Shown here one piece after another: positions 3,401 through 31,370 of a DNA stretch of 64,000 nucleotides. The first letter of the stretch is position 1, and each line of letters begins with the position of its first letter. The notes below the pieces were generated by a model. It was not told the origin of the DNA. It ran no database searches and saw only the letters and a program-made list of their open reading frames with translations. The stretch comes from Klebsormidium nitens (lineage: Eukaryota > Plantae > Klebsormidiophyceae). Made by a program: the position numbers and the translations under genes. Location of the stretch: positions 1-64,000 of the forward strand of contig DF237079.1 of assembly GCA_000708835.1 (NCBI GenBank). Reading direction: 5' to 3'.

Positions 3401-6400
3401 TCCGTCTGTGGTTCTCTTCAATGGATGGTGACTGAACTGCAATTCGGCGGCTGATTACCTCCGTTTACGAGCATGAATGGACGGTCGGAAGGAATCATTG
3501 CTGCAGAAGGTTGAGTCGTCGAGAGGTTCGATTGAGGCGGAAGGTGGAACACCTGTACTTTACATTTCGAAAGTACAACGGGAGTCCGAAATAATCAGAT
3601 GGTCCATAGACAAGAGTCGGAATGTCCAGTTGGTTTATAGAGGAGAGACGGAATCTCGAGATTGGTTCATTGCCTTTATTGGAAGTCACCTTGAGGCGCA
3701 TCTGTGAGACTCAGATTGCTCGCTTTCCTCCGAATACTCCCTTCTAATGCGTTTAGCCAACCCTTAACGTCAGAGTGGAAACAGCAAACGGGACTGTGGC
3801 TGTGCAGGCAAGGAGAAGGCCGAAGTCGAGGCTCTTATCAACGAGGGCGTATACGAAATGGAGGCACTGAAAGCGGGGGGGTGGATTACGGACATTAAGT
3901 ACGCAGACGAGATTGAGGAGGATTTGAAGAAGCGGACGGGGGGCAAGGAGGACAAAGTGTTGGCGGTGGATTACAGGCGGTACTCGAGGGTTAAGGAGAA
4001 AACGCTAGGCCTTACAGGTGGGTTTCCATTACTTGGTTCCGAGGGCGTTGTGAGGTTGCGTGCTTCGCTATGTGGTAGAGGGTTGTGTTGGCCTACCGGC
4101 ATTCGAAGCTTCTGTCCTTATAGATCATTCATTACAGATCATTCTGTGCACTAACCATACCGAAAATTCTGTCCTTATAGATCATTCCGTGCACTAACGT
4201 ATGGGTCGTCATGTTCATCTTTATGGGCCATTCTTGTTTGGTGCAATCCACGTCCGTTGGCATGGATCATGATGGTTGTTTTGAGGGGCTGAACGGTCAG
4301 AAAGTTTCGAGATGTGGCCGTCTTCGGAGTCGTTTTCTGCTGAGGGTGAATGTGGGTGTTATTCTCAAAAAGCTTGGGCCTGGATGCCAGACTCCCTAAA
4401 TTGCCAGTTTTTCAAAAAGTGTAGAAAGATCTGAGGAAGGAGAAAGTGGGTAGCTTCGACATTTTGGTGGGTGCGTCAGGCACCTGCTCGCAGCCTAGTT
4501 TCCAACCGAGTTGTTTTCTCGAACTTGCAGGCCGGGACCGGATAGCAGTCATTCGGGCGGCTGGGGGCATCAGCCGCGGCAAGGGCGGCCGAACGGGGAG
4601 CGGCATTGGCAGCGACGCGCTGATTCAACAGCTGCGGCGAGTGCGGGACAATAAGAGGATAAAGGCGGTCATTCTGCGGATTGATAGCCCCGGTGGAGAT
4701 GCGCTAGCATCCGACCTGTGAGTTGGCTTGACTTGAAGCACCTTCTTGGCATCGGTTTTGTCTGTTCCTCGTCGTTCTTTTGTTTCGGATGTTTTCGCGT
4801 CTGTTAGCTTTTGTCGTGGGGCCTCCAAATGCTTCCCTCTTTTGGTTGTGGGATGTTTTGCGTCTGTTAGCCTGTGTCATGTTTGGAAATTCTTCTCTAA
4901 TTTGTCTGTGTGATGTTTTCGCGTCTGTTAGCCTGTCTCATGCCTCGAAATTCTTCCCTATTCTTCGCTTGTTCACAAGCAAAAGTGATTGCGTCGATCG
5001 TGACACGCATGCGTCGAAAAGGCGTGCCATGCTTCCAATCTCATGCCTCGAAATTCTTCCCTATTCTTCGCTTGTTCACAAGCAAAAGTGATTGCGTCGA
5101 TCGTGACACGCATGCGTCGAAAAGGCGTGCCATGCTTCCAAATGTTTGTCTCCATTCACAAGCAGAAGTGACTGCGCTAAGTCGCAGTACGTGTGCGTCG
5201 AAGGAGTCAGCAGGATTGGATCTCAAGTAGAGAAATCGTTTTTTGCAGCATTTGGATCTGAAGCAGAAAACTCGTTTGTTGCAGCATGTGGCGGGAGTTG
5301 CAGATGGTCGCGAAAGAGAAGCCGGTCATTGCTTCTATGGTCGACGTGGCAGCCTCCGGGGGCTACTACATGGCCATGGGTACGGACACAATTGTCGCGG
5401 AGGACTTGACGATTACCGGGTCCATCGGCGTTGTTACCGGTACGTTCATCTTCCATTGTGTTCTAGATCGACCCTGCGGCGCTATCGTTGCTGAAATACT
5501 CATGTTGCAAAGGTGCGCGAGTGTTGTATTGGAAGGTTTTACGGAGTGCAGACACTTTACGAAGTCATGCGGCAGTCCACTTTGGAGAGGGAGTCTTACC
5601 CAAACGCAAAAGAAGCCGTTGCTTTGTCAAGAATGTCAGGAGAGGGCTTGCTCTTTCGTTCCAAGAATGTCAATGTTGAAGTTTAAACAAGACAAAGAAA
5701 CGTGCTCTGCGCTTTCTAAAAGGACGCTTCGTTAGTGCTGCTGCCGAGACACCCTTGTCTTTTTGTTTGGTCTTCCACGCTTTCCGTTGTGATCTTAAAA
5801 GCAAGATTATGAGAGGCTGTTGAACACGCGGCTGAGAACCGATGCTACCCAGTTTCCAACAGCTCTGCTCCACAATATGTATCGAGTGGCCTGACACCGC
5901 CTTGCTGCCTCAATATGCAGGCAAATTCAGCCTAGCCGAGCTGTACAAGCGCGCCGGATTTTCGAAGGAGATTATCTCGAGGGGAAAGTTCGCGGAACTG
6001 AACGCAGACAACCGGTCGTTCACCGAAGAGGAGGAGGACTACTTCGCCAAAAGTGCGATGCACGCATACAAAACGTTCCGGGACAAGGCCGCGCTCTCGC
6101 GCAAGATGTCGGTGCGTGCCGGTCGCCGCCTCCGCTGTCGTCAGCTGCTGACGTCACATGTCTTGCTGACTGGGTACTAGAAGTTTGCATGTTCAAGGAT
6201 TTTGTATGTTGAAGACCTGTGCGCTGGGGAACTTCGCGCTAACCCGGGCTTGAGACGGGGGTTAGCCAGCTCCCAGGACTGCTCGGTTTGCCTAACCCGA
6301 CCGGGCTGTCCAGGTTGAGAGGCGGTTCCCGCCGGATTTGTGCACCGTCTCTTACAGGGGGTTTTTTCGTTTGTTGTTCGCATTAATTGTCCGCTCTGGT

Positions 6401-7332
6401 AGGCCTTTCCTGCCAAACCGTTTTCCTCCGAGTAGCATTGTGTCTGTCTTTTGGCAACTTGCGAGCTTCGAATGCATCTTCGCCGTCTTCTCGTCCCGCG
6501 AACTCGTCAGCTTGTTTCGACGGTCTGAGTCGGTCTCCTGCCTTTAATGTTTGTATCTTCGTCGTCGTTTTTCCTTTTGCGTTGTCTTTCCAAGGGTCGT
6601 CTGCGCCCTGCAATCGTCCACGATATGCGGTTCCTCTGAGTTCTGGACGAGGCCTGCCCGCGCCAATGACAGACTGGTCTTTTGTTAGAACAACTTTCTT
6701 GGCTTCGTTCTCGGATTGTCGTGGCGTCTTTGAGAGCCTTAACCGCAGTCGATATGATAATTCATCCATCCGAACTTCCTTCGCTGTCCTTAAAAAGTCA
6801 TCGGTTTTTGGAAAAGAGACGAGTCTGGTAGCTTCGGAAGAGACGGGAACGGCGCCAAGTCAAGGAAACGTTCTGGAGCAGATTTTGACGTCCAATCCAT
6901 GTGATGCAGATCGAGCAACTAGAGGAGGTGGCTCAGGGCCGGGTCTGGACCGGGAAGCAAGCGCTCGAGAAGGGCCTAGTCGACGTGCTCGGTGGATTCT
7001 CCCAAGCACTCGCGATCGCAAAAGAGAGGGCAGGCATTCCGCTCAACCAAAACGTTACGCTCATCGAGTTCTCGCGACAAACGCCGTCCCTAGGCGCGTT
7101 GCTATCCAGCGGGGTAGGCGGAAGTGCGCAACTAGAAAGTTTGGCGTCTTTGGTGGAAGTGGGTAGAGAGAAGTTGTTGTCTAGCGCGCCGCAGTATAAA
7201 ATGGAAGCTTTCGAGTTGGGCGACTCGGGTTTGGGAGCACGGGAAATGGGTTCGGACTTGGAAGAGGGGGCGGGGGCACTCCTGGCGCTGTTGCCGGAGT
7301 TTCTAGAAGACGTAACGAACAGTAGGGAATGA
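464..7332 (+). CDS. SPPA: Plastid signal peptide peptidase A (S49 serine protease SppA), 10 exons, ~729 aa
   Basis: Exons 464-631 (transit-peptide-like MASSVVQQSFAIRALSS), 1141-1503, 1888-2071, 2563-2684, 3103-3289, 3808-4017, 4531-4717, 5285-5439, 5921-6111, 6910-7332. All have GT-AG boundaries with consistent phases (2190 nt). SppA motifs: KGSVLTMNLSG, GCGWGKIQELRRHI, VQRIGKYKSAGD, ILRIDSPGGDALASDLMWREL, DVAASGGYYMAM, TGSIGVV, QGRVWTG. Confidence 0.95.
2861..3019 (+). repeat. Two upstream tandem copies of the SPPA exon-5 acceptor plus first ~48 nt
   Basis: ctctgcag|ggctcgttcctgggtggggttctggagaaggtggg...gagccgca occurs at 2861-2916, at 2965-3019 (1-nt deletion) and at the real exon 3095-3150. 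Confidence 0.95.
4110..4200 (+). repeat. Short direct repeat in SPPA intron 6
   Basis: ttctgtccttatagatcattc occurs twice, each followed by a (t/c)gtgcactaac segment. Confidence 0.8.
4785..5145 (+). repeat. Tandem repeats in SPPA intron 7: three ~60-bp units, then a 102-bp direct repeat x2
   Basis: gatgtttt(c)gcgtctgttagc at ~4789, ~4852 and ~4912. ctcatgcctcgaaattcttccctattcttcgc...gtgccatgcttcca at 4938 and 5040 (period 102). Confidence 0.9.
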
Positions 7333-8420: not shown

Positions 8421-11180
8421 TCAAGGTTTATAGACTCGAGATTTCGACAGTCCAAACCCATAGTCTCCCTTATATTCTACCTTCGCATTCTCGCCCCATT
8501 GTTTCAGCCTCGCTACTGAAACGTCGTGTAATGTGCGTGCCTTGTCGTACAGCAAAACGTCCCACTTATTCAGTTCCATCAACTTTGCCGTAGTGGCTTC
8601 CGACAACTTGGACCGCACGACCATCCCCGCGCTCTCGTCTAATATGGTCGGGTTGGATTGGGTGCCATTTGTCAAAGGGGCCACCGTCGTTCTCATATGG
8701 AACAAGTTCGAAAGGAGGGGGGCCAAGGGCTCGACCTCCGATATGAGTTCCGAGACAAATACGAGCGCGAAGTTTTGCAGGTTGCGTAAGGCACATTGGT
8801 AATGCTCCTGGGTCATTTCAGTAAGCAGCTCAAGTGGGGTGTCCTCCGAAAGCCGCTCTTCGGAGAGATCGGAGACCAACCCTGTTCCCTGGTTGCACAA
8901 GACCCGCGTCATGTGGTTGCTCTTTTGGAAGCCGCCAACCGGAAAGTCTGCGTCTCGGACAAAGTCTTCAAACGCACTTTCCCCAACCGGTGGCGCCAGC
9001 TTTCCCGTTTGGATGCTCCAGTTCCACCAGCTGACGACCCGGTGGACCGGGTGCCGGAGCGTGGTGACGTAAGCGAAGGTGCCCCGATGGCCGATTGAGT
9101 GGATCCCATAAGAGAAGTGGCCGCTGACAAGCCGCGAGCTTTGAAACGCGCGCCGCAAACGGGCTTGGATTGGGGTTGGCAGGCGGTTCCAGCTTTCCTC
9201 GTAGGTATACGAGAAGATCCAAGGTATACAGTCTAGACTTTCCCATGCGGGGCTGCAAGGAAGAGAAGCAGAAAGTTAGCAAAATCAGAGCGCGTCCAGT
9301 GGGCCCGAGTCACACTCTGTGACTCTGAAGGTTTTTAGAACGTTTCCGCTTCTTTGCCCGCAAACGGGTTATGAAGCCCCACGGTTTTGGTTCCCCAGGA
9401 ATTCCAAGACATGCGGGCAGAATCATGTCAGAGTCGGAGCGCTTGATCATGATTTCGGGGGGATTTCCTGCTGGCTAAGGCTCAATTTACCAACGGAGAG
9501 CTTATATAATAAGGGCGCGGACACATGTGTTATTTTTCAATTGCGTGCCCATTCGTGTGCACCTGATGAAATTCGAGGTTCCTCCGTTTCAGCAATAGCT
9601 CAGACGTTCACTGGGCGCTGTACGGCTATACAGTCAATCATGGTTGGAAGAGAAAAAGGTTTCTGGACACAGATGACAACAGATGCATCATGAAAGTGCA
9701 TCGTCATAAGCAAGGACCACGAAAACTTTGAATCTGTGTATGGGGTTTGCAAATACTTCGGAGCAGAAGGCTCTTGAAAGTTGTTAGATGTCTGACTGCG
9801 AAGCCCCCAAAAACAAGTACTCATGCGAGTTGCGACGACCCCGGCCCTTATTGGTATGTGCCTAGTAAGCAGATGTAACAGAATTTAGGCTGCGGGACAG
9901 AGTTAAGCGGCTGCTTCAAGTTTGCTATCATCCATCCGTTCTCTACTAGAACGGTTTTACTGACTGAGGTCGTACGTCTACCACAACGTCTACCGCGACG
10001 ACCGTTCGGTTGGAAAAGAACACTATCAGACTTCCGGTACAACCAAAAGACACACTCAATCGCGTTCAGAAAGCAATGGATTTTTGCGACCAACTCACTC
10101 ATCCCAAGCCGTCAGACCTCCGCAAGTCTCCGGGTCATACTCGGCGTAATGCAAGAGAGCGAACAGCTGGTTGCACCGCTCCCCTTCCACGTCCTCGAGC
10201 ACCCGCATGTTGGGCTGGCACTCGTCCATGTCCTTGTGCGTCGAGAACATGACGTCGAGAGCGCTGCTGGCGGCTTTCTGAATTCTCAACAGGAAAACAG
10301 TCGCGCGGCCCGCGACAAACTCCTCGTGCAAAGGCTCCAGAGGAAGCAGGTTCACTCTGCAAAGTGACAAGACGTTCATTCCGAAAACAAGACGGTCATT
10401 ACGAGCTACCATAAACGGGTCAAACAGCCCGCCTGGCTCGAAGGTTTTTGTTCCTCAATGGGCACTTCTCACCAGAGTTTTGCTGTTGAGATTTGTGCGA
10501 CTGTGACTGGCGCAACTGGGAAGATGTATCACTTGATGAATACTGGAATGCTGTACGTTGGAGACCCTTTAGCTCAACCACACCTGGCCAGTTCTCGGCT
10601 GCCAGCTACACGACGGAGTCGGGAACGGAACTTTCACTGCACGAATTTAATGCGCAGTACTTTGTCAGCACCGCTGCGGCCGAAAGCATAGGCACAGCGG
10701 AATCCTTGCTTCTCTGCATGCAGAAGAATTCATGATCTTCCAAAGACAACCTGATGCCCGGCCCAGCTTATGGTATGTAGCTTCTGTGTTGTCTGTACCG
10801 AGAATCGAAGACAAAAAGGCCGGAGGGGGCAGGCAGGCATGACTATTTCGACGATAATTGCCGAGGTGCCTGGGCACTCACTCTGAAGTCTGTCGCTCAT
10901 CCTTGGAAAGCGCTAAGGCTTCTCTGCCGTCAAGGTGCTTCCAAATATCGGTATGATTGTCCCCAAACCCCTTGGCCACTAGGGTATCTGACTTCCCATC
11001 CGTTCCGCTCAGTATGAAAGGGTGGTCCAGGCTGCTCACACTCATCCAGGTCGCCCAGTATGCGGCTCCTAGGCCTTGTAAGAGGAACGAGCAGGCCGCC
11101 CAGCCGAAAAGAATAATCACTAAGCAGTTCCGGCGACTAGCCGATAGCTGGGGGAACTTGAAAGTCGGGCGGAATTCCAT
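8421..11180 (-). CDS. Type II membrane (Golgi-like) sulfotransferase, Sulfotransfer_2 / HS2ST-HS6ST-like fold, 3 exons, ~462 aa
   Basis: Exons 11180-10882, 10356-10099, 9252-8421, joined by phase-2 GT-AG introns (1389 nt). N-terminal hydrophobic anchor CLVIILFGWAACSFLLQGLGAAYW. 5'-PSB-like VFLLRIQKAASSAL, then SGHFSYGIH, 3'-PB-like YVTTLRHPVHRVVSWW, and C-terminal LMELNKWDVLLYDKA. Confidence 0.85.
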
Positions 11181-12322
11181 TTGGAAGCGCTTCGACCGGT
11201 GCTTAGTTGCAGGATGAAGAAGGCCGCCGAAAGTCTGAGAATCTTCCTCAGTGCGTGCGTGCAAATCTCTAGCTGCTGGTCTATCAATCCAAATTGAGAG
11301 ATGAAACGGCGCGTCAAGATTATGGCAAATGGGGGAAAGGAACGATGGTAATTCAAGTTTGAAGCCGAGAGAAGAATTAGAGTCGGTCCAAAGGCCGCTT
11401 GACGTTAACAGTCAGTACTAGCGCTGTTGTGGCCGAGGAAAAAGCAGAGAAGTGAGCGTAACTGGTGCACAGTTCCCACAAGTCCGCAGCTCGTTTCCAG
11501 ATCAACAGGGTTGATCGACCAGATGCGCACTTCTCTCAGTTTTGCAATTTTCCTTTCATGTGGATTTTGGAGACGCTGCGAGGGACCACTTTCAACAACT
11601 GGCCATGGAGAGTGCCAGGCGGAGTCCCTTGAATCTAACGCATACACATAATAGTCGTGATGTGACAGGAAGTGCTCCTCGAAGTAAACATTTTCTTCAC
11701 AGATTCCAACTTCACACGGTAGGCTCAGCATCTATGCCAGTTTTATGGTATGGTACTTGGGGAAGTTCGACCGCTCCGGGTTATCCGTGGATGCGTCACG
11801 GCGGTCACATCACAACCACGAAAGGCAAGGTATAAGCAATGCATGATGAGACTACTCGGGGCGCCACACACAGCCTTGCATCACATGACAAGACTATTTG
11901 CGCACTGCTTATACCCATCGCTTGCAATTTCCTTTGACAGGCCGAGGCTGACGCGTTTCCGTGCGTCAACTACCACCATACTGCTCAGTCTGCCCGTTTC
12001 CGCCACTGTGCTGAGACCGGCTAGGTATGATTGGTTGCAGCGCTGTCTTGGCTGGACGCTGACGTCAAGTGGCTCGCGGTCCGCAAAACGTTGGGCTGCT
12101 GTCTTTTGTGACGTGACGGCGCCCTCCAGGACTGAAGAGAGGGGCTGCTAGGACCTCAAAAGTCCGTCCACTCCTGCGCGTGCCAGAGCACGAAAGTCAG
12201 AAGCTATATCAGGCTGTGTCTCCTCGGCAAAGCAAAGCGACAAGCTGAACGATAGTTAGACGAATTCATGCAGGCTTGACAGCCTTTCCCTCAACGTGCT
12301 GAGATCGGATTGCTTTCGAGTC

Positions 12323-13699
12323 ATGGGCTTTCTGAGCGGTTCCCTCAGGTCCGGATCCGCGGGACATAACCCGGGCGTCTTGAGGCAGTCCCCTGTTCTG
12401 TTTCTGTCGGTGATCACAACTGCCATTGTGGTCTATTTCAGCATCTGGGATGCCGCGTTCGGCGTTGGAGCCCCAGATCTTGCAAGAACAGTATCCGGGG
12501 GAGTTGGCTCTCAGCCACTTGATGTCGGGGCAACCATGGAGGCCTGGCGGAACGGTTCTCTGAGCGGAAGGCAGTTGCACATCGAGTTGGGGCTCACGGA
12601 TGCTGTCATTCCCGCCATATACAACTGCTTCAATGAGCCGTATCCGCTGCTTGACAGATCTGAAGGGCAGCCCTGTTTCTACTTGAGGACTCCGATCCCG
12701 GTGATAGGGACCAACACGGTGAACAATCCTGCGATGCTCCGCAGGCTTGTTCTTAGTATTGACGTCCCTGTGCAAGTCATAGTCATCGTTGTGAACACCA
12801 TTCCTGGAGAAGACGGCAAGCAGGATGAGCTGGATATGATGGCAATTATAGACGAGCTGCAAGAGCTGATAGGGAGGAGCTTCTTTAAGGTCGTCAGAAG
12901 CGGGTGCAACCGGGGCTGTGCCGGTGGCTGGAACACCATTATCCACTCCACCTTGGATTCGCCTTGGTGGCTTATCGTCAATGATGACGCAGCTTTCGTT
13001 CCCGGCGCGCTGCGTACGCTGTATGACTACGTCAGCAGCAACCCCGACGTGGCTTTTTACAAGCTGACGACATATCAAGTCTTCCTGATCACCAAGCGTG
13101 CGGTGACCGAAGTAGGGGTGTTTGACGAGAACATCTGGCCTGCATACGGGGAAGATTGTGATTACGACCTTCGTCTACAGCTGAGCGGTGTTATGGTCGC
13201 TTCCAGGCCCCCCGAGTTTAGTAACATCCATGGGGACCCAGAGTCGGGCGCTTCGTCCTCCCTCATAAACACAAGGGGAGGAGGGCACTCGGGATACGGG
13301 CAGCGGAGTAAATGCTCTCATTCAAACAACAGGATCTACTACCAGAAGAAGTGGAATCTGTCCGTGCCCGGTTGTGGTAGGCAGCTCGAGGGGATGTTCC
13401 GAACCCCTCACGGTAACCCTTCTCGCAGCCTCGCCAGCTGGACGTTTGACAGAGAACTTCGTGCCCGGTCCCAAACGTGCTGGGCGCCGACCAACAGAAT
13501 AGACAACTGGCTTAGGGAAGATGCTGCAAGTTACTACGCCAAGGTGACCCTCCCAGGGGACCAGCCGGCGTCGAATTGGGAACGAAACCTCATTACCCTC
13601 CAGGCGGAAGAAAGCGAGTCGGAAACTGTTAGCGAGCTGCTGTCCAGTGGAGTGAAAGACGGCACTCGATGTGTCTCTCCGTTCGCAGAGATGATGTAA
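12323..13699 (+). CDS. Intronless GT-A fold / GT2-family glycosyltransferase with N-terminal membrane anchor, ~458 aa
   Basis: Single 467-codon ORF (12296-13699), first ATG at 12323. TM segment VLFLSVITTAIVVYFSIW. GT2 hallmarks: PIPVIG...LRRLVLSID, NRGCAGGWN, DxD-like WWLIVNDD, GVFDENIWPAYGEDCDYDLRL. Confidence 0.85.
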   Translation: MGFLSGSLRSGSAGHNPGVLRQSPVLFLSVITTAIVVYFSIWDAAFGVGAPDLARTVSGGVGSQPLDVGATMEAWRNGSLSGRQLHIELGLTDAVIPAIYNCFNEPYPLLDRSEGQPCFYLRTPIPVIGTNTVNNPAMLRRLVLSIDVPVQVIVIVVNTIPGEDGKQDELDMMAIIDELQELIGRSFFKVVRSGCNRGCAGGWNTIIHSTLDSPWWLIVNDDAAFVPGALRTLYDYVSSNPDVAFYKLTTYQVFLITKRAVTEVGVFDENIWPAYGEDCDYDLRLQLSGVMVASRPPEFSNIHGDPESGASSSLINTRGGGHSGYGQRSKCSHSNNRIYYQKKWNLSVPGCGRQLEGMFRTPHGNPSRSLASWTFDRELRARSQTCWAPTNRIDNWLREDAASYYAKVTLPGDQPASNWERNLITLQAEESESETVSELLSSGVKDGTRCVSPFAEMM

Positions 13700-14139
13700 T
13701 CAGGGTGATTAGCGGGGTCTGTTCGAGGAGTGTTTTGACTACTGTCCAGACGTCCAAGTCGTTTGCTTAGCAAGTTTGCACGGAAGCATAGCTCTTTCTG
13801 ACAAGAAGCTCTAGGTGCTCTACGTCCAAGCGTACACCATATGGCCGGCTTCGATCGAAGTGAGTTATATATCAGAGAGACATAGGCTGATAAAGGGCGC
13901 TGCCCCTCTAAATTTGTGACACAAATCTCTGGTCTTGTTTCCTTTTTGCAAAATCCGAGGCTTACATTCGGGGCTGAATCCTATACATGAATGTTCGCAT
14001 GCACGTCAGCTGGCAGATATCATGCGCCTTCGGACAGAAACCTCTCAAATACTAGCTCATCATGCATGTTTTCATTTGGTAGTCATGCTCGCCACAAGCC
14101 CGGCCTGCGTAAGATTCTGCGCCCCTGCGCGCTCACACT

Positions 14140-16436: not shown

Positions 16437-18763
16437 ATGGGTAAGAAGCGCTCTTTTGACTTTGCCTTCAAGTCCTCTATCTATAGCGACAGACTTCTGC
16501 ACGTGCGCGCCGAAGGAGAACGTCCAGACAAAGTTGACGAAGAGAAGCCTTTATCAGAAGACAGACAGCCAGCTGAGCCTGAAGAGGAAGGCACAAAATC
16601 CGGCGAAGAACGAAGGAATGAATGTGAGGCAGGTGAGGACGTAAACTTCAATAGCGTACAGCCAACCACTTTCCCTATGTGTTTCGTTTTTTGACTACCC
16701 CCTACCTGCTTTGCTCTGACTTTGTTCAGAATGTTTGTTTTGAAGTGCAAGCGAGTTTGGACCTTCCGCTCAGGGTCACGTAGGTGCATCTCGTGTACAG
16801 TCAATCATTTGCCTTGAAAATTATCGTCCAACCTGTTCAATAGCAACAGAATATGGAGCTCATAAGCATATCTCAGCTCCTAGCTCCCCTACAGTTCTGA
16901 AAGCAGGAAAAGACTGTCTTCTAGAAGTCAAGGTCATTCAATTAGATTAGCAGGACTTTTTCGATCGATTCATGCCGTGTTCTGAAGCAGACTTCGAAAG
17001 GAATGCACAAGTCCCGTTCTTCTTTGGCTCTAGGTCCACTCAAAATTCCGGTCAGCAGCGGAATCCTGGCATCAAGCTCTGAATACTTTCGGAAGATGTT
17101 TGAGGCTGGCCTCCGAGAAAGCGGAACAAAAGATCAGCCGATCGACATCTGCCTGCCAATTGAAGGCAAGTAATGACTCGCCGTGCCTTGTTACTGAAGG
17201 ATCCTACTAGGTTGCTTTCAGATTTCAGCAGTGTGCTCAAGTCAGGGCCCGTTCTCTGTGCATTCCCATCAACAACAATCCTCTTGAAAGAAATCGTTCC
17301 AGACTTGTTTGAGAGTCAGTTTCCTGTCCTCATGGCCTCTTATCGAAGAAATCATATTGTCACCAGTAGCCAGCAGACTCTTCTCTCTTGATTCAAGCTG
17401 ATCTACCTCGTTGGGGACTTGCAAGAGCTTCCTTTTATCAATCTTACTGCTTGTCCGTATCCGACGTAGTGTCCGCTTAAAAATGTTTTTGCTTTCACCC
17501 TGTGCCATTCTGTTTTCAGCTTACAAAAGCTGCCATTAGACCGTCAATAAAAGCTGAAAGCAAATGTACCTCCTCAATGAACCTACCAGGAAAGCCTACA
17601 TTCCTCCTGCAGACATCGAAGCCTTCCAGCAGCTCATCCGTTTCTTCTACACGGAAGAACTTCCAGGGAACGATAGTGCCACTCTCATCCGCCTCCTCAA
17701 AGTTGCGGACCGCTTCGAGAGCGCCCTCTGCATGGAAAGCTGCGTCTCTGCTTTGCTCCAAGCGCCTCGATCTCTAGAGACAGCTCTCCTGTACCTCTCC
17801 TTACCAGAAGCAGTCAAGTCTTCCCCAGCAGCAAAGCCCCTGGTGTCCTCCGTCTCGGACTTCGTAGGCTGGAGCTTCGATCAGGTTCTCAGCGCAGACA
17901 ACATTGCAGAAATGCCGTTCAGCATGATCAAACATCTGCTCGAGTCTGCTCCGCTCGGAAGCGGATGCGAAGAGATTCTCTTCAAGTGTTTCTTAGAGTG
18001 GGCCCGTAGTGGGGGTGACGTCAGCAGCGGGAGCAACGTCAGCAAGGACGGGCGAGAGGCCAAGGTCAAGGAGCTAGCGGGGTTCCTGAAGTATCCGTTC
18101 ATGGATCCGAGGTTTCTTGAGACGGAGGTCGCCTCAGCCCCCGAGATGCAAACCCCCGTGTGCCAGTTGCACCTTCAGGAGGCGCGCACGTTTTGGCAAG
18201 GGTCGGAACAGGAGCGCGAGCAGATGCGCGCGCAGAATCCCACCTGCCGTTTACGTCCGAGGGAAGGATGCCCGGAGTCCGCTCGCGTCAGCAAATCTGA
18301 GAAGGGGGAGTGGGTGGTAGACGTCAGGTTCCCTGTTGAAGAGGTGACAGGTTTTAAGGTTGAGCAAGTAGTCGAGAAGAACGTCAAAATACGGCCTGAT
18401 CTGTCTTGCTGCGTTCAATTGATCCGTAAGGCGCCCGACGAGAAGAAGAGAGCGGACGACGGCCGCGTGGGTGTGTTCGTGGGTCTGGTAGGTCCGGCTC
18501 GAAGAGACGGTGCTGCTGTATCTGCAAGATGGAGAGTTGGTTTTCGAAATCAGGAAACGGGACGGTACGAGCGAAAACTCGATGGCGGCAGCTGCTCCGA
18601 TACATTTACGCGCGTCTTCGCTGACGATATCCTTTGTTTGGGGGTGAAGGACATTGGTATCGAGTGGAGGAACTTCTGCCTTAGGGAAGGCCCGTTCCTT
18701 GTTGACGGCAACCTGTACGTCCGGGCTGCCTTTGAAAAGCTAGTAATAGACCGTGCAGGATAA
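16437..18763 (+). CDS. BTB/POZ-BACK protein, LRB/POB1-like (CUL3 adaptor family), 3 exons, ~492 aa
   Basis: Exons 16437-16632, 17034-17165, 17613-18763 (1479 nt); intron 2 is GC-AG. Motifs FDFAFKSSIYSDRLL, IPVSSGILASSSEYFRKMFEAGLRES, EAFQQLIRFFYTEEL...LLKVADRFE...CMESC, ETALLYLSLP, FLEWAR, LKYPFM. Confidence 0.9.

Positions 18764-19708: not shown

Positions 19709-31370
<11,662 letters not shown>

Follow-up and report, generated by a model that had tools for sequence, protein, structure and literature searches.

The window analysed here is a stretch of 64,000 nucleotides from the alga Klebsormidium nitens (assembly GCA_000708835.1, contig DF237079.1, positions 1 to 64,000 of the forward strand). 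Between positions 8421 and 13699, it contains a gene for a predicted sulfotransferase (ST) and a gene for a predicted glycosyltransferase (GT), which are arranged head to head. An earlier note on this DNA had described start codons at 11180 and 12323 with about 1.1 kb between them; this layout was confirmed, and the exact gap is 1,142 bp. ST and GT are two separate, intact, and transcribed genes. Our overall reading, which we hold with moderate confidence, is that they represent two genes for predicted Golgi-type enzymes in a lineage-specific neighbourhood rather than a demonstrated two-gene pathway module. The layout of the locus is as follows.

11180 (ATG) to 8421 (stop), minus strand: ST gene, three exons, about 462 amino acids, consistent phases.
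11181 to 12322, no strand: divergent intergenic region, 1,142 bp from ATG to ATG; a presumed shared promoter, judged from position only.
12323 to 13699, plus strand: GT gene, a single intronless open reading frame of 458 amino acids plus the stop codon at 13697-13699.

The ST gene, read on the minus strand, is composed of the following parts.

10882 to 11180, minus strand: exon 1 with start codon, cytosolic tail, signal-anchor, and stem; the donor GTGAGT follows 10882.
11046 to 11126, minus strand: N-terminal hydrophobic anchor, amino acids 19-45; Kyte-Doolittle 19-residue maximum of 2.13 at amino acid 19.
10357 to 10881, minus strand: intron 1, 525 nt, GTGAGT..CAG, exactly skipped by an RNA contig.
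10099 to 10356, minus strand: exon 2, bearing the 5'-phosphosulfate-binding (5'-PSB) loop; 72-79% identical in amino acids to the same exon of the paralogs in K. nitens.
10263 to 10289, minus strand: 5'-PSB loop LRIQKAASS with the conserved Lys, within the conserved family block LRIxKxASS.
9253 to 10098, minus strand: intron 2, 846 nt, GTGAGT..CAG, deduced from phase, splice signals, and the paralog junction AWD/DPAW, with no spanning read.
8421 to 9252, minus strand: exon 3 plus stop (8423-8421), a 276-codon open frame; 61-69% identity to K. nitens paralogs.
9105 to 9122, minus strand: GHFSYG motif with the candidate catalytic His; aligns with GHVSY of HS2ST.
9024 to 9071, minus strand: 3'-phosphate-binding (3'-PB) motif YVTTLRHPVHRVVSWW; aligns with YYITMLRDPVSRYLSEW of HS6ST3.

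Intron 1 was confirmed to the base by a 234-nt RNA contig of sequencing run X2, which joins 10213-10356 to 10882-10971 with zero mismatches and shows that ST is both transcribed and spliced. Both exon junctions are in phase 2, with GAA and GAC as the junction codons. Annotated K. nitens paralog proteins map exactly onto exons 2 and 3 and have the same junction between these two exons. We found the N-terminal anchor and the GHFSYG motif reported for ST to be present, the former by hydropathy and the latter at 9105-9122. The anchor is flanked by a net charge of +3 on its N-side and of -1 on its C-side, and no other segment of ST exceeds the Kyte-Doolittle threshold of 1.6, the maximum in exon 3 being 1.43. 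Among 50 relatives, the G and H of GHFSYG as well as the R, P, R, and S of the 3'-PB motif are at least 90% conserved. The His of HS2ST that aligns with the His of GHFSYG is the catalytic base. In the wider profile built from the 50 relatives, the 5'-PSB block lhipKtaGts aligns with PKTASTS of HS2ST and IQKTGGT of HS6ST; LRIQKAASS of the window was placed in this block through the family alignment.

The features of the GT gene on the opposite strand are listed below.

12389 to 12448, plus strand: N-terminal hydrophobic anchor, amino acids 23-42; Kyte-Doolittle value of 2.03 at amino acid 23, N-flank charge +2.
12680 to 13480, plus strand: predicted GT-A catalytic domain, amino acids 120-386, from the fold model, Foldseek, Atlas shape matches, and PHROG 29879.
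12980 to 12988, plus strand: DxD-type motif N220-D221-D222, of which N220 and D222 do not vary among 9 relatives.
13145 to 13174, plus strand: YGEDCDYDLR motif, of which E277, D278, D280, and R284 are invariant in 9 aligned relatives.
13640 to 13696, plus strand: C-terminal motif C-V/I-S-P-F/A-A, present in 4 of 5 algal family members and absent from phage relatives.
13700 to 13879, plus strand: 3' untranslated region of at least 180 nt, from a contig of RNA run X1 over 13654-13879 with zero mismatches.

Hydropathy revealed no second membrane-like segment in GT. In both proteins, the only hydrophobic segment is therefore N-terminal and has a positive N-flank, in agreement with the type-II anchoring that had been proposed for both. 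Over its entire length, GT is collinear with the K. nitens protein KFL_000120210 at 86% identity, with a ratio of nonsynonymous to synonymous substitution rates (dN/dS) of 0.15 and a dS of 0.5. The dN/dS of ST against its paralogs is 0.15-0.21, and the range across both genes, 0.15-0.22, corresponds to purifying selection.

Transcription of GT is evident from RNA contigs that are identical to the window over 13030-13879. Run X2 holds contigs of both genes, while X1 and X4 hold contigs of GT only, with depths of 2-3. The words sampled from the locus were found only in these three runs, which all belong to one study; 20 further runs labelled as the same species contain almost none of them. The expression data thus consist of low-depth contigs from three small runs of a single study and are too thin for judging co-regulation. 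Additional contigs, from run X3, stem from a second, related organism. They apparently represent DNA, as the introns are covered. ST, GT, and parts of the region between them are represented at 90-99% identity; no X3 contig bridges ST and GT.

The region is eukaryotic, as seen from its spliceosomal introns, and the best protein matches of both genes are all Klebsormidium nitens proteins. A collection of 15 billion proteins contains a 100% identical entry for neither the ST nor the GT protein, and an exact look-up of the GT protein sequence returned no record. RNA contigs identical to the window exist despite the absence of identical protein entries. The public K. nitens gene set may therefore lack this locus or leave it without annotation. 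No further copy of either gene was found elsewhere in the 64-kb window.

In order to assign ST to a family, the window protein was searched exon by exon, and the paralog P0010 served as a full-length proxy. Single-sequence searches of the PDB gave no useful match for ST or GT, and profiles alone worked. The ST family profile matched zebrafish HS6ST3 (E 5e-4); with the wider profile, HS6ST3 (E 2e-31) and HS2ST1 (E 2e-20) were recovered with the three motifs aligned. Neither the ST nor the GT protein had a match in NCBIfam. Of the 50 relatives of ST, 36 matched the sulfotransferase profile PF03567 at E<1e-3 and 23 matched the galactose-3-O-sulfotransferase family PF06990. The relative P0012 scored 27.7 bits against PF03567. 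The neighbours of the ST family in the Atlas are Sulfotransfer_2 clusters, with the Atlas model of P0010 matching at template modelling (TM) scores of 0.47-0.53. On this profile and motif evidence, ST is predicted to be a member of the HS2ST/HS6ST/Gal3ST-like Sulfotransfer_2 superfamily.

The resemblance to HS2ST1 (PDB 3f5f/4ndz) and HS6ST3 (PDB 5t03) comprises the Lys-bearing 5'-PSB loop, the GH(F/V)SY motif, and the RxPxxRxxS pattern of the 3'-PB motif, all aligned with ST, as well as an N-terminal single-pass anchor. The sequence identity, in contrast, is low. Green algae are not known to make heparan sulfate, and the acceptor of ST must therefore differ from that of HS2ST and HS6ST.

An exhaustive search with the ST profile returned 1,047 clusters at E<1e-3. 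Only 13 of these reached E<1e-30, which indicates that the close ST family is small. Relatives with names came from K. nitens itself, from Pyramimonas parkeae, a prasinophyte, and from two amoebozoans, Balamuthia and Endostelium; going by these named matches, the family is confined to Klebsormidium plus a few protists and algae. In a maximum-likelihood tree, in which the window ST was represented by exon 3 only, it fell into a five-member clade of exclusively Klebsormidium sequences (support 97/96), closest to KFL_000190500 with 69% identity. The sister group of this clade consists of three metagenome sequences, and there is a second, more distant Klebsormidium clade. The ST family has thus undergone a lineage-specific expansion in Klebsormidium, comprising at least eight genes.

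Two further observations were made on the ST paralogs. In P0016 (KFL_000090180), the 5'-PSB loop has Gln where the family has a conserved Lys (LTFRQGATN compared to LRIQKAASS, alignment columns ~150-160), and this paralog may be catalytically dead. Three K. nitens paralogs carry an extra intron inside their equivalent of exon 3 (L003:5085-5263, L003:11960-12164, and L007:13428-13946). Exon 3 is uninterrupted in the window (8424-9251) and at the loci L008, L005, and L006, pointing to intron gain or loss within the ST family. The annotated P0015 protein seems to translate part of the extra intron.

A glycan as the sulfate acceptor of ST is a prediction drawn from family membership only. We also considered a non-glycan acceptor, namely tyrosines of secreted peptides as for TPST, a glycolipid, or a small molecule, in which case the GT neighbour would be irrelevant. 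Plant TPST is an enzyme of the secretory pathway that belongs to the same HS6ST-like superfamily as ST, and family membership alone leaves the acceptor unfixed. Animal members of the galactose-3-O-sulfotransferase family, which is matched by the 23 relatives mentioned above, sulfate glycolipids. The anchor of plant TPST is C-terminal according to the earlier note, which had set ST apart on this ground. The distinction holds, since hydropathy shows only the segment of amino acids 19-45 in ST and no hydrophobic segment at the C-terminus. None of the 30 clusters of ST relatives that were looked up carries a TPST or land-plant name; these include all 13 clusters of TPST-like length (450-565 amino acids) among the best 150. 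The N-terminal anchor and the lack of TPST-named relatives among these clusters argue against membership of ST in the TPSTs. Moreover, the named relatives are confined to Klebsormidium, Pyramimonas, Balamuthia, and Endostelium, and the best solved structure matches are carbohydrate sulfotransferases. In favour of a TPST-like role, TPST-like genes have been reported to be conserved in streptophyte algae (PMC6421419). Weighing these points, we consider a non-glycan acceptor distinctly unlikely and prefer a sugar as the predicted acceptor.

For GT, the glycosyltransferase profile PF00535 is matched by a slim margin (23.6 bits, cut-off 23.3), and on this profile the assignment is weaker than the earlier note had implied; this domain is also present in the distant relatives P0005-P0008. 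PHROG 29879, whose name 'galactosyl transferase' is an annotation and not an assay result, gave a far better match, over amino acids 132-345 (E 1.8e-15). An AlphaFold model of GT had a predicted local distance difference test (pLDDT) score of mostly 75-93 over amino acids 68-310; the anchor and the tail after amino acid 374 were poorly modelled. Using this model, a Foldseek search of the PDB gave 394 chains at E<=0.001, with GT2 enzymes at the top of the list (E 1e-8). The GT-A/GT2 matches, which include the Leptospira glycosyltransferase 6p61, WrtF, K4CP, and GalNAc-transferases, share 12-15% identity with GT. The best shape match in the Atlas was a cluster of 265-amino-acid GT2 proteins of tailed phages (TM 0.80, 251 residues within 122-387), and GT2 clusters in the Atlas reach TM 0.84 against the model. 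The profile and fold evidence mark GT as a predicted GT-A-fold, GT2-like glycosyltransferase. The description of GT as GT2-like and type-II-anchored is thus supported by the fold, the PHROG match, the invariant motifs, and the anchor at amino acids 23-42.

A metagenome scan, in which the YGEDCDYDLR motif served as the pattern, yielded 423 confirmed GT relatives of about 250 amino acids at 30-35% identity; the GenBank phage collection gave one weak match only. Phage GT2 proteins (PHROG 29879 and the Uroviricota clusters of ~250-265 amino acids) are the closest relatives that the small algal GT family has outside the algae. The likeness lies in the catalytic domain, amino acids 120-386, at the identity just given and includes the PAYxEDxD and FDEN motifs. 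In contrast to the phage proteins, the algal GTs have in addition the N-terminal anchor, a conserved stem (amino acids 68-120), and a tail that closes the C-terminus with CVSPFA. They also form a clade of their own in an unrooted tree (support 98), consisting of the window GT, two K. nitens paralogs, and two metagenome proteins. A recent transfer of GT from phage to alga is not supported, given the separate algal clade on a long branch. From an unrooted tree with long branches, we draw no conclusion on the direction of any transfer.

The catalytic-domain family is large in aquatic metagenome contigs (L010-L089), where it occurs as GT2 proteins of about 250 amino acids. One relative (L019:7751-8548) and a large terminase gene (L019:14951-16471) are about 6.4 kb apart on a contig that also carries a methyltransferase and a second glycosyltransferase gene, and the metagenome family is therefore at least partly phage-borne. 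The metagenome proteins P0005, P0006, and P0007 (760-785 amino acids) have a tandem double GT2-like domain with NDD-type and PAY.EDCD motifs in both copies, preceded by an N-terminal hydrophobic segment.

Taken individually, the predicted activities are as follows. ST would transfer sulfate from 3'-phosphoadenosine-5'-phosphosulfate (PAPS) onto a hydroxyl group of an acceptor, most likely a sugar, in the lumen. GT would transfer a sugar from a nucleotide sugar with the help of a divalent metal, using the NDD (DxD-type) and ED..D..R motifs. The single-pass N-terminal signal anchors of both enzymes have a topology typical of the Golgi lumen, where we would expect them to be localised. ST and GT may also be co-regulated, since the 1.1 kb of divergent upstream DNA is common to both and could act as a shared promoter. 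A joint sulfated-sugar pathway is plausible; functional coupling of the two enzymes appears rather unlikely to us.

In a true module, GT would place a sugar on a glycan of the wall or mucilage, ST next to it would sulfate the product, and one bidirectional promoter would drive both genes. The head-to-head orientation of the genes, whose start codons are 1,142 bp apart, the luminal type-II topology of both proteins, and the transcription of both, with X2 holding both and the sampled words confined to the runs of one study, would all fit this idea. Sulfated wall polymers exist in the early-diverging streptophyte alga Chlorokybus, whose 'pectin' bears sulfate esters, previously not known in streptophyte pectins (PMC10953000). 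In brown algae, a gene with an ST domain lies next to the fused FK-GFPP gene for fucose activation, and this synteny was found in three species (PMC6418280). With a sulfotransferase gene linked to one that may serve the same glycan pathway, this is the nearest algal precedent for linked sulfated-glycan genes. The brown-algal linkage is syntenic across three species, whereas the arrangement in the window is kept intact at no related locus examined. For Klebsormidium walls, we found no report of sulfate esters.

The evidence on linkage comes from related loci, which were taken with up to 10 kb per side and searched by tblastn for the partner gene. GT was found near none of nine other ST-relative loci (five K. 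nitens loci with six genes, plus L005, L090, and L093). The K. nitens ST loci include L003 with its tandem pair, L006, L007, and L008; the 3.8-kb contig of P0017 was left out. L005 is a 42-kb metagenome contig, and L090, a contig of 10.8 kb, provides 3.4 kb upstream of exon 2 and thus room for most of a GT in a placement as in the window. Conversely, at the three other algal GT loci whose flanks were long enough (L001, L004, and L002), no intact ST lies beside GT, L009 being too short, and no ST was found at any of the 80 phage-type GT loci.

The locus L001 of the GT paralog KFL_000120210 is informative in this regard. Upstream of the paralog, at L001:8781-9028 on the minus strand, we found a decayed copy of ST exon 1 in collinear position and on the strand opposite to GT. 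The anchor in this relic has 76% protein identity; a frameshift separates its two pieces, there is no ATG at the start position, and exons 2 and 3 of ST are absent from L001. Five collinear patches with 72-84% identity connect the window with the region upstream of KFL_000120210, two of them in ST exon 1 and one reaching into the start of GT. No further flank is shared between the window and L001 according to blastn or tblastx. Orthology of the two loci was rejected, and L001 is a paralogous duplicate, because the flanks share nothing. The decayed exon and the intergenic patches mean that GT, the intergenic DNA, and at least ST exon 1 were duplicated together, as one segmental duplication, and therefore the head-to-head layout is older than this event (GT dS ~0.5). 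This age speaks for the module. The fate of the copies speaks against it, since GT at L001 is constrained (dN/dS 0.15) and its ST half is non-functional, which indicates that GT is independent of an ST neighbour in cis.

The adjacency in the window is a single case among ~9 paralog loci and could be within reach of chance; given the relative numbers of ST and GT genes, one chance adjacency would be unsurprising, although this is an estimate and not a genome-wide computation. As related loci do not keep the pairing, the pairing itself adds little evidence. Overall, we regard the module as doubtful. The earlier note had proposed a co-regulated pair for a sulfated glycan and had named a lack of conserved linkage, along with a lack of co-expression, among the points that would refute this proposal, and the linkage is absent from the ST, algal GT, and phage-type GT loci alike. 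Its observation was right and its family assignments broadly right; as a hypothesis, its functional reading is reasonable, but linkage, a test that it had set itself, goes against it.

Our preferred reading, two intact enzyme genes that are neighbours in one lineage, also has evidence weighing against it. The distribution of contigs and sampled words over X1, X2, and X4 is weakly in line with a shared, condition-specific expression of both genes. Judging by the contigs of the X3 organism, one or more close relatives probably have the same arrangement. The joint duplication of GT, the intergenic DNA, and ST exon 1 shows that the arrangement is not very recent, which leaves room for real coupling. 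The predicted enzyme role of ST is affected as well: the HS2ST/HS6ST-like assignment made previously is borne out by the profiles, but it is weaker than had been implied with respect to PF03567, for which exon 3 of the window alone scored 15.3 bits, below the cut-off of 22. In addition, a fold model of the paralog P0010, made from an alignment of 8 rows, had a pLDDT of 42 and was too poor for use.

The locus and its family of at least eight related genes provide specific candidates for carbohydrate sulfotransferases in an alga that is both tractable and related to land plants. In the literature, we found no report naming enzymes for the sulfate esters of the Chlorokybus wall. It is conceivable, though unlikely in our judgement, that the pair is a working two-gene unit for making and sulfating a wall or mucilage glycan in this terrestrial streptophyte, and that the STs expanded in Klebsormidium are the long-missing carbohydrate sulfotransferases with which early-diverging streptophytes sulfate their wall polymers, the Chlorokybus 'pectin' being an example, with a phage-like single-pass GT2 as the partner. 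A single-pass, phage-like GT2 of this type is not known from land plants, and GT may therefore mark a wall or glycoprotein linkage that was lost en route to land plants.

The genes surrounding the pair are listed here for completeness.

5286 to 7329, plus strand: exons of a Peptidase_S49 (SppA-like) gene, flanking the pair upstream.
17564 to 18760, plus strand: exons of a BTB/BACK-domain gene, flanking the pair downstream.
21641 to 22240, minus strand: exons of a Helicase_C-domain gene, also flanking the pair.

The flanks had been described as unrelated housekeeping genes. They are indeed unrelated to glycan synthesis; 'housekeeping' is only a loose label for genes of the Peptidase_S49 and BTB/BACK types. 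At another K. nitens locus, KFL_000190500, the ST paralog closest to that of the window, adjoins two Glyco_hydro_9 (cellulase-type) genes (L007:15562-24247). This neighbourhood may be a further wall-related setting, or it may be due to chance.

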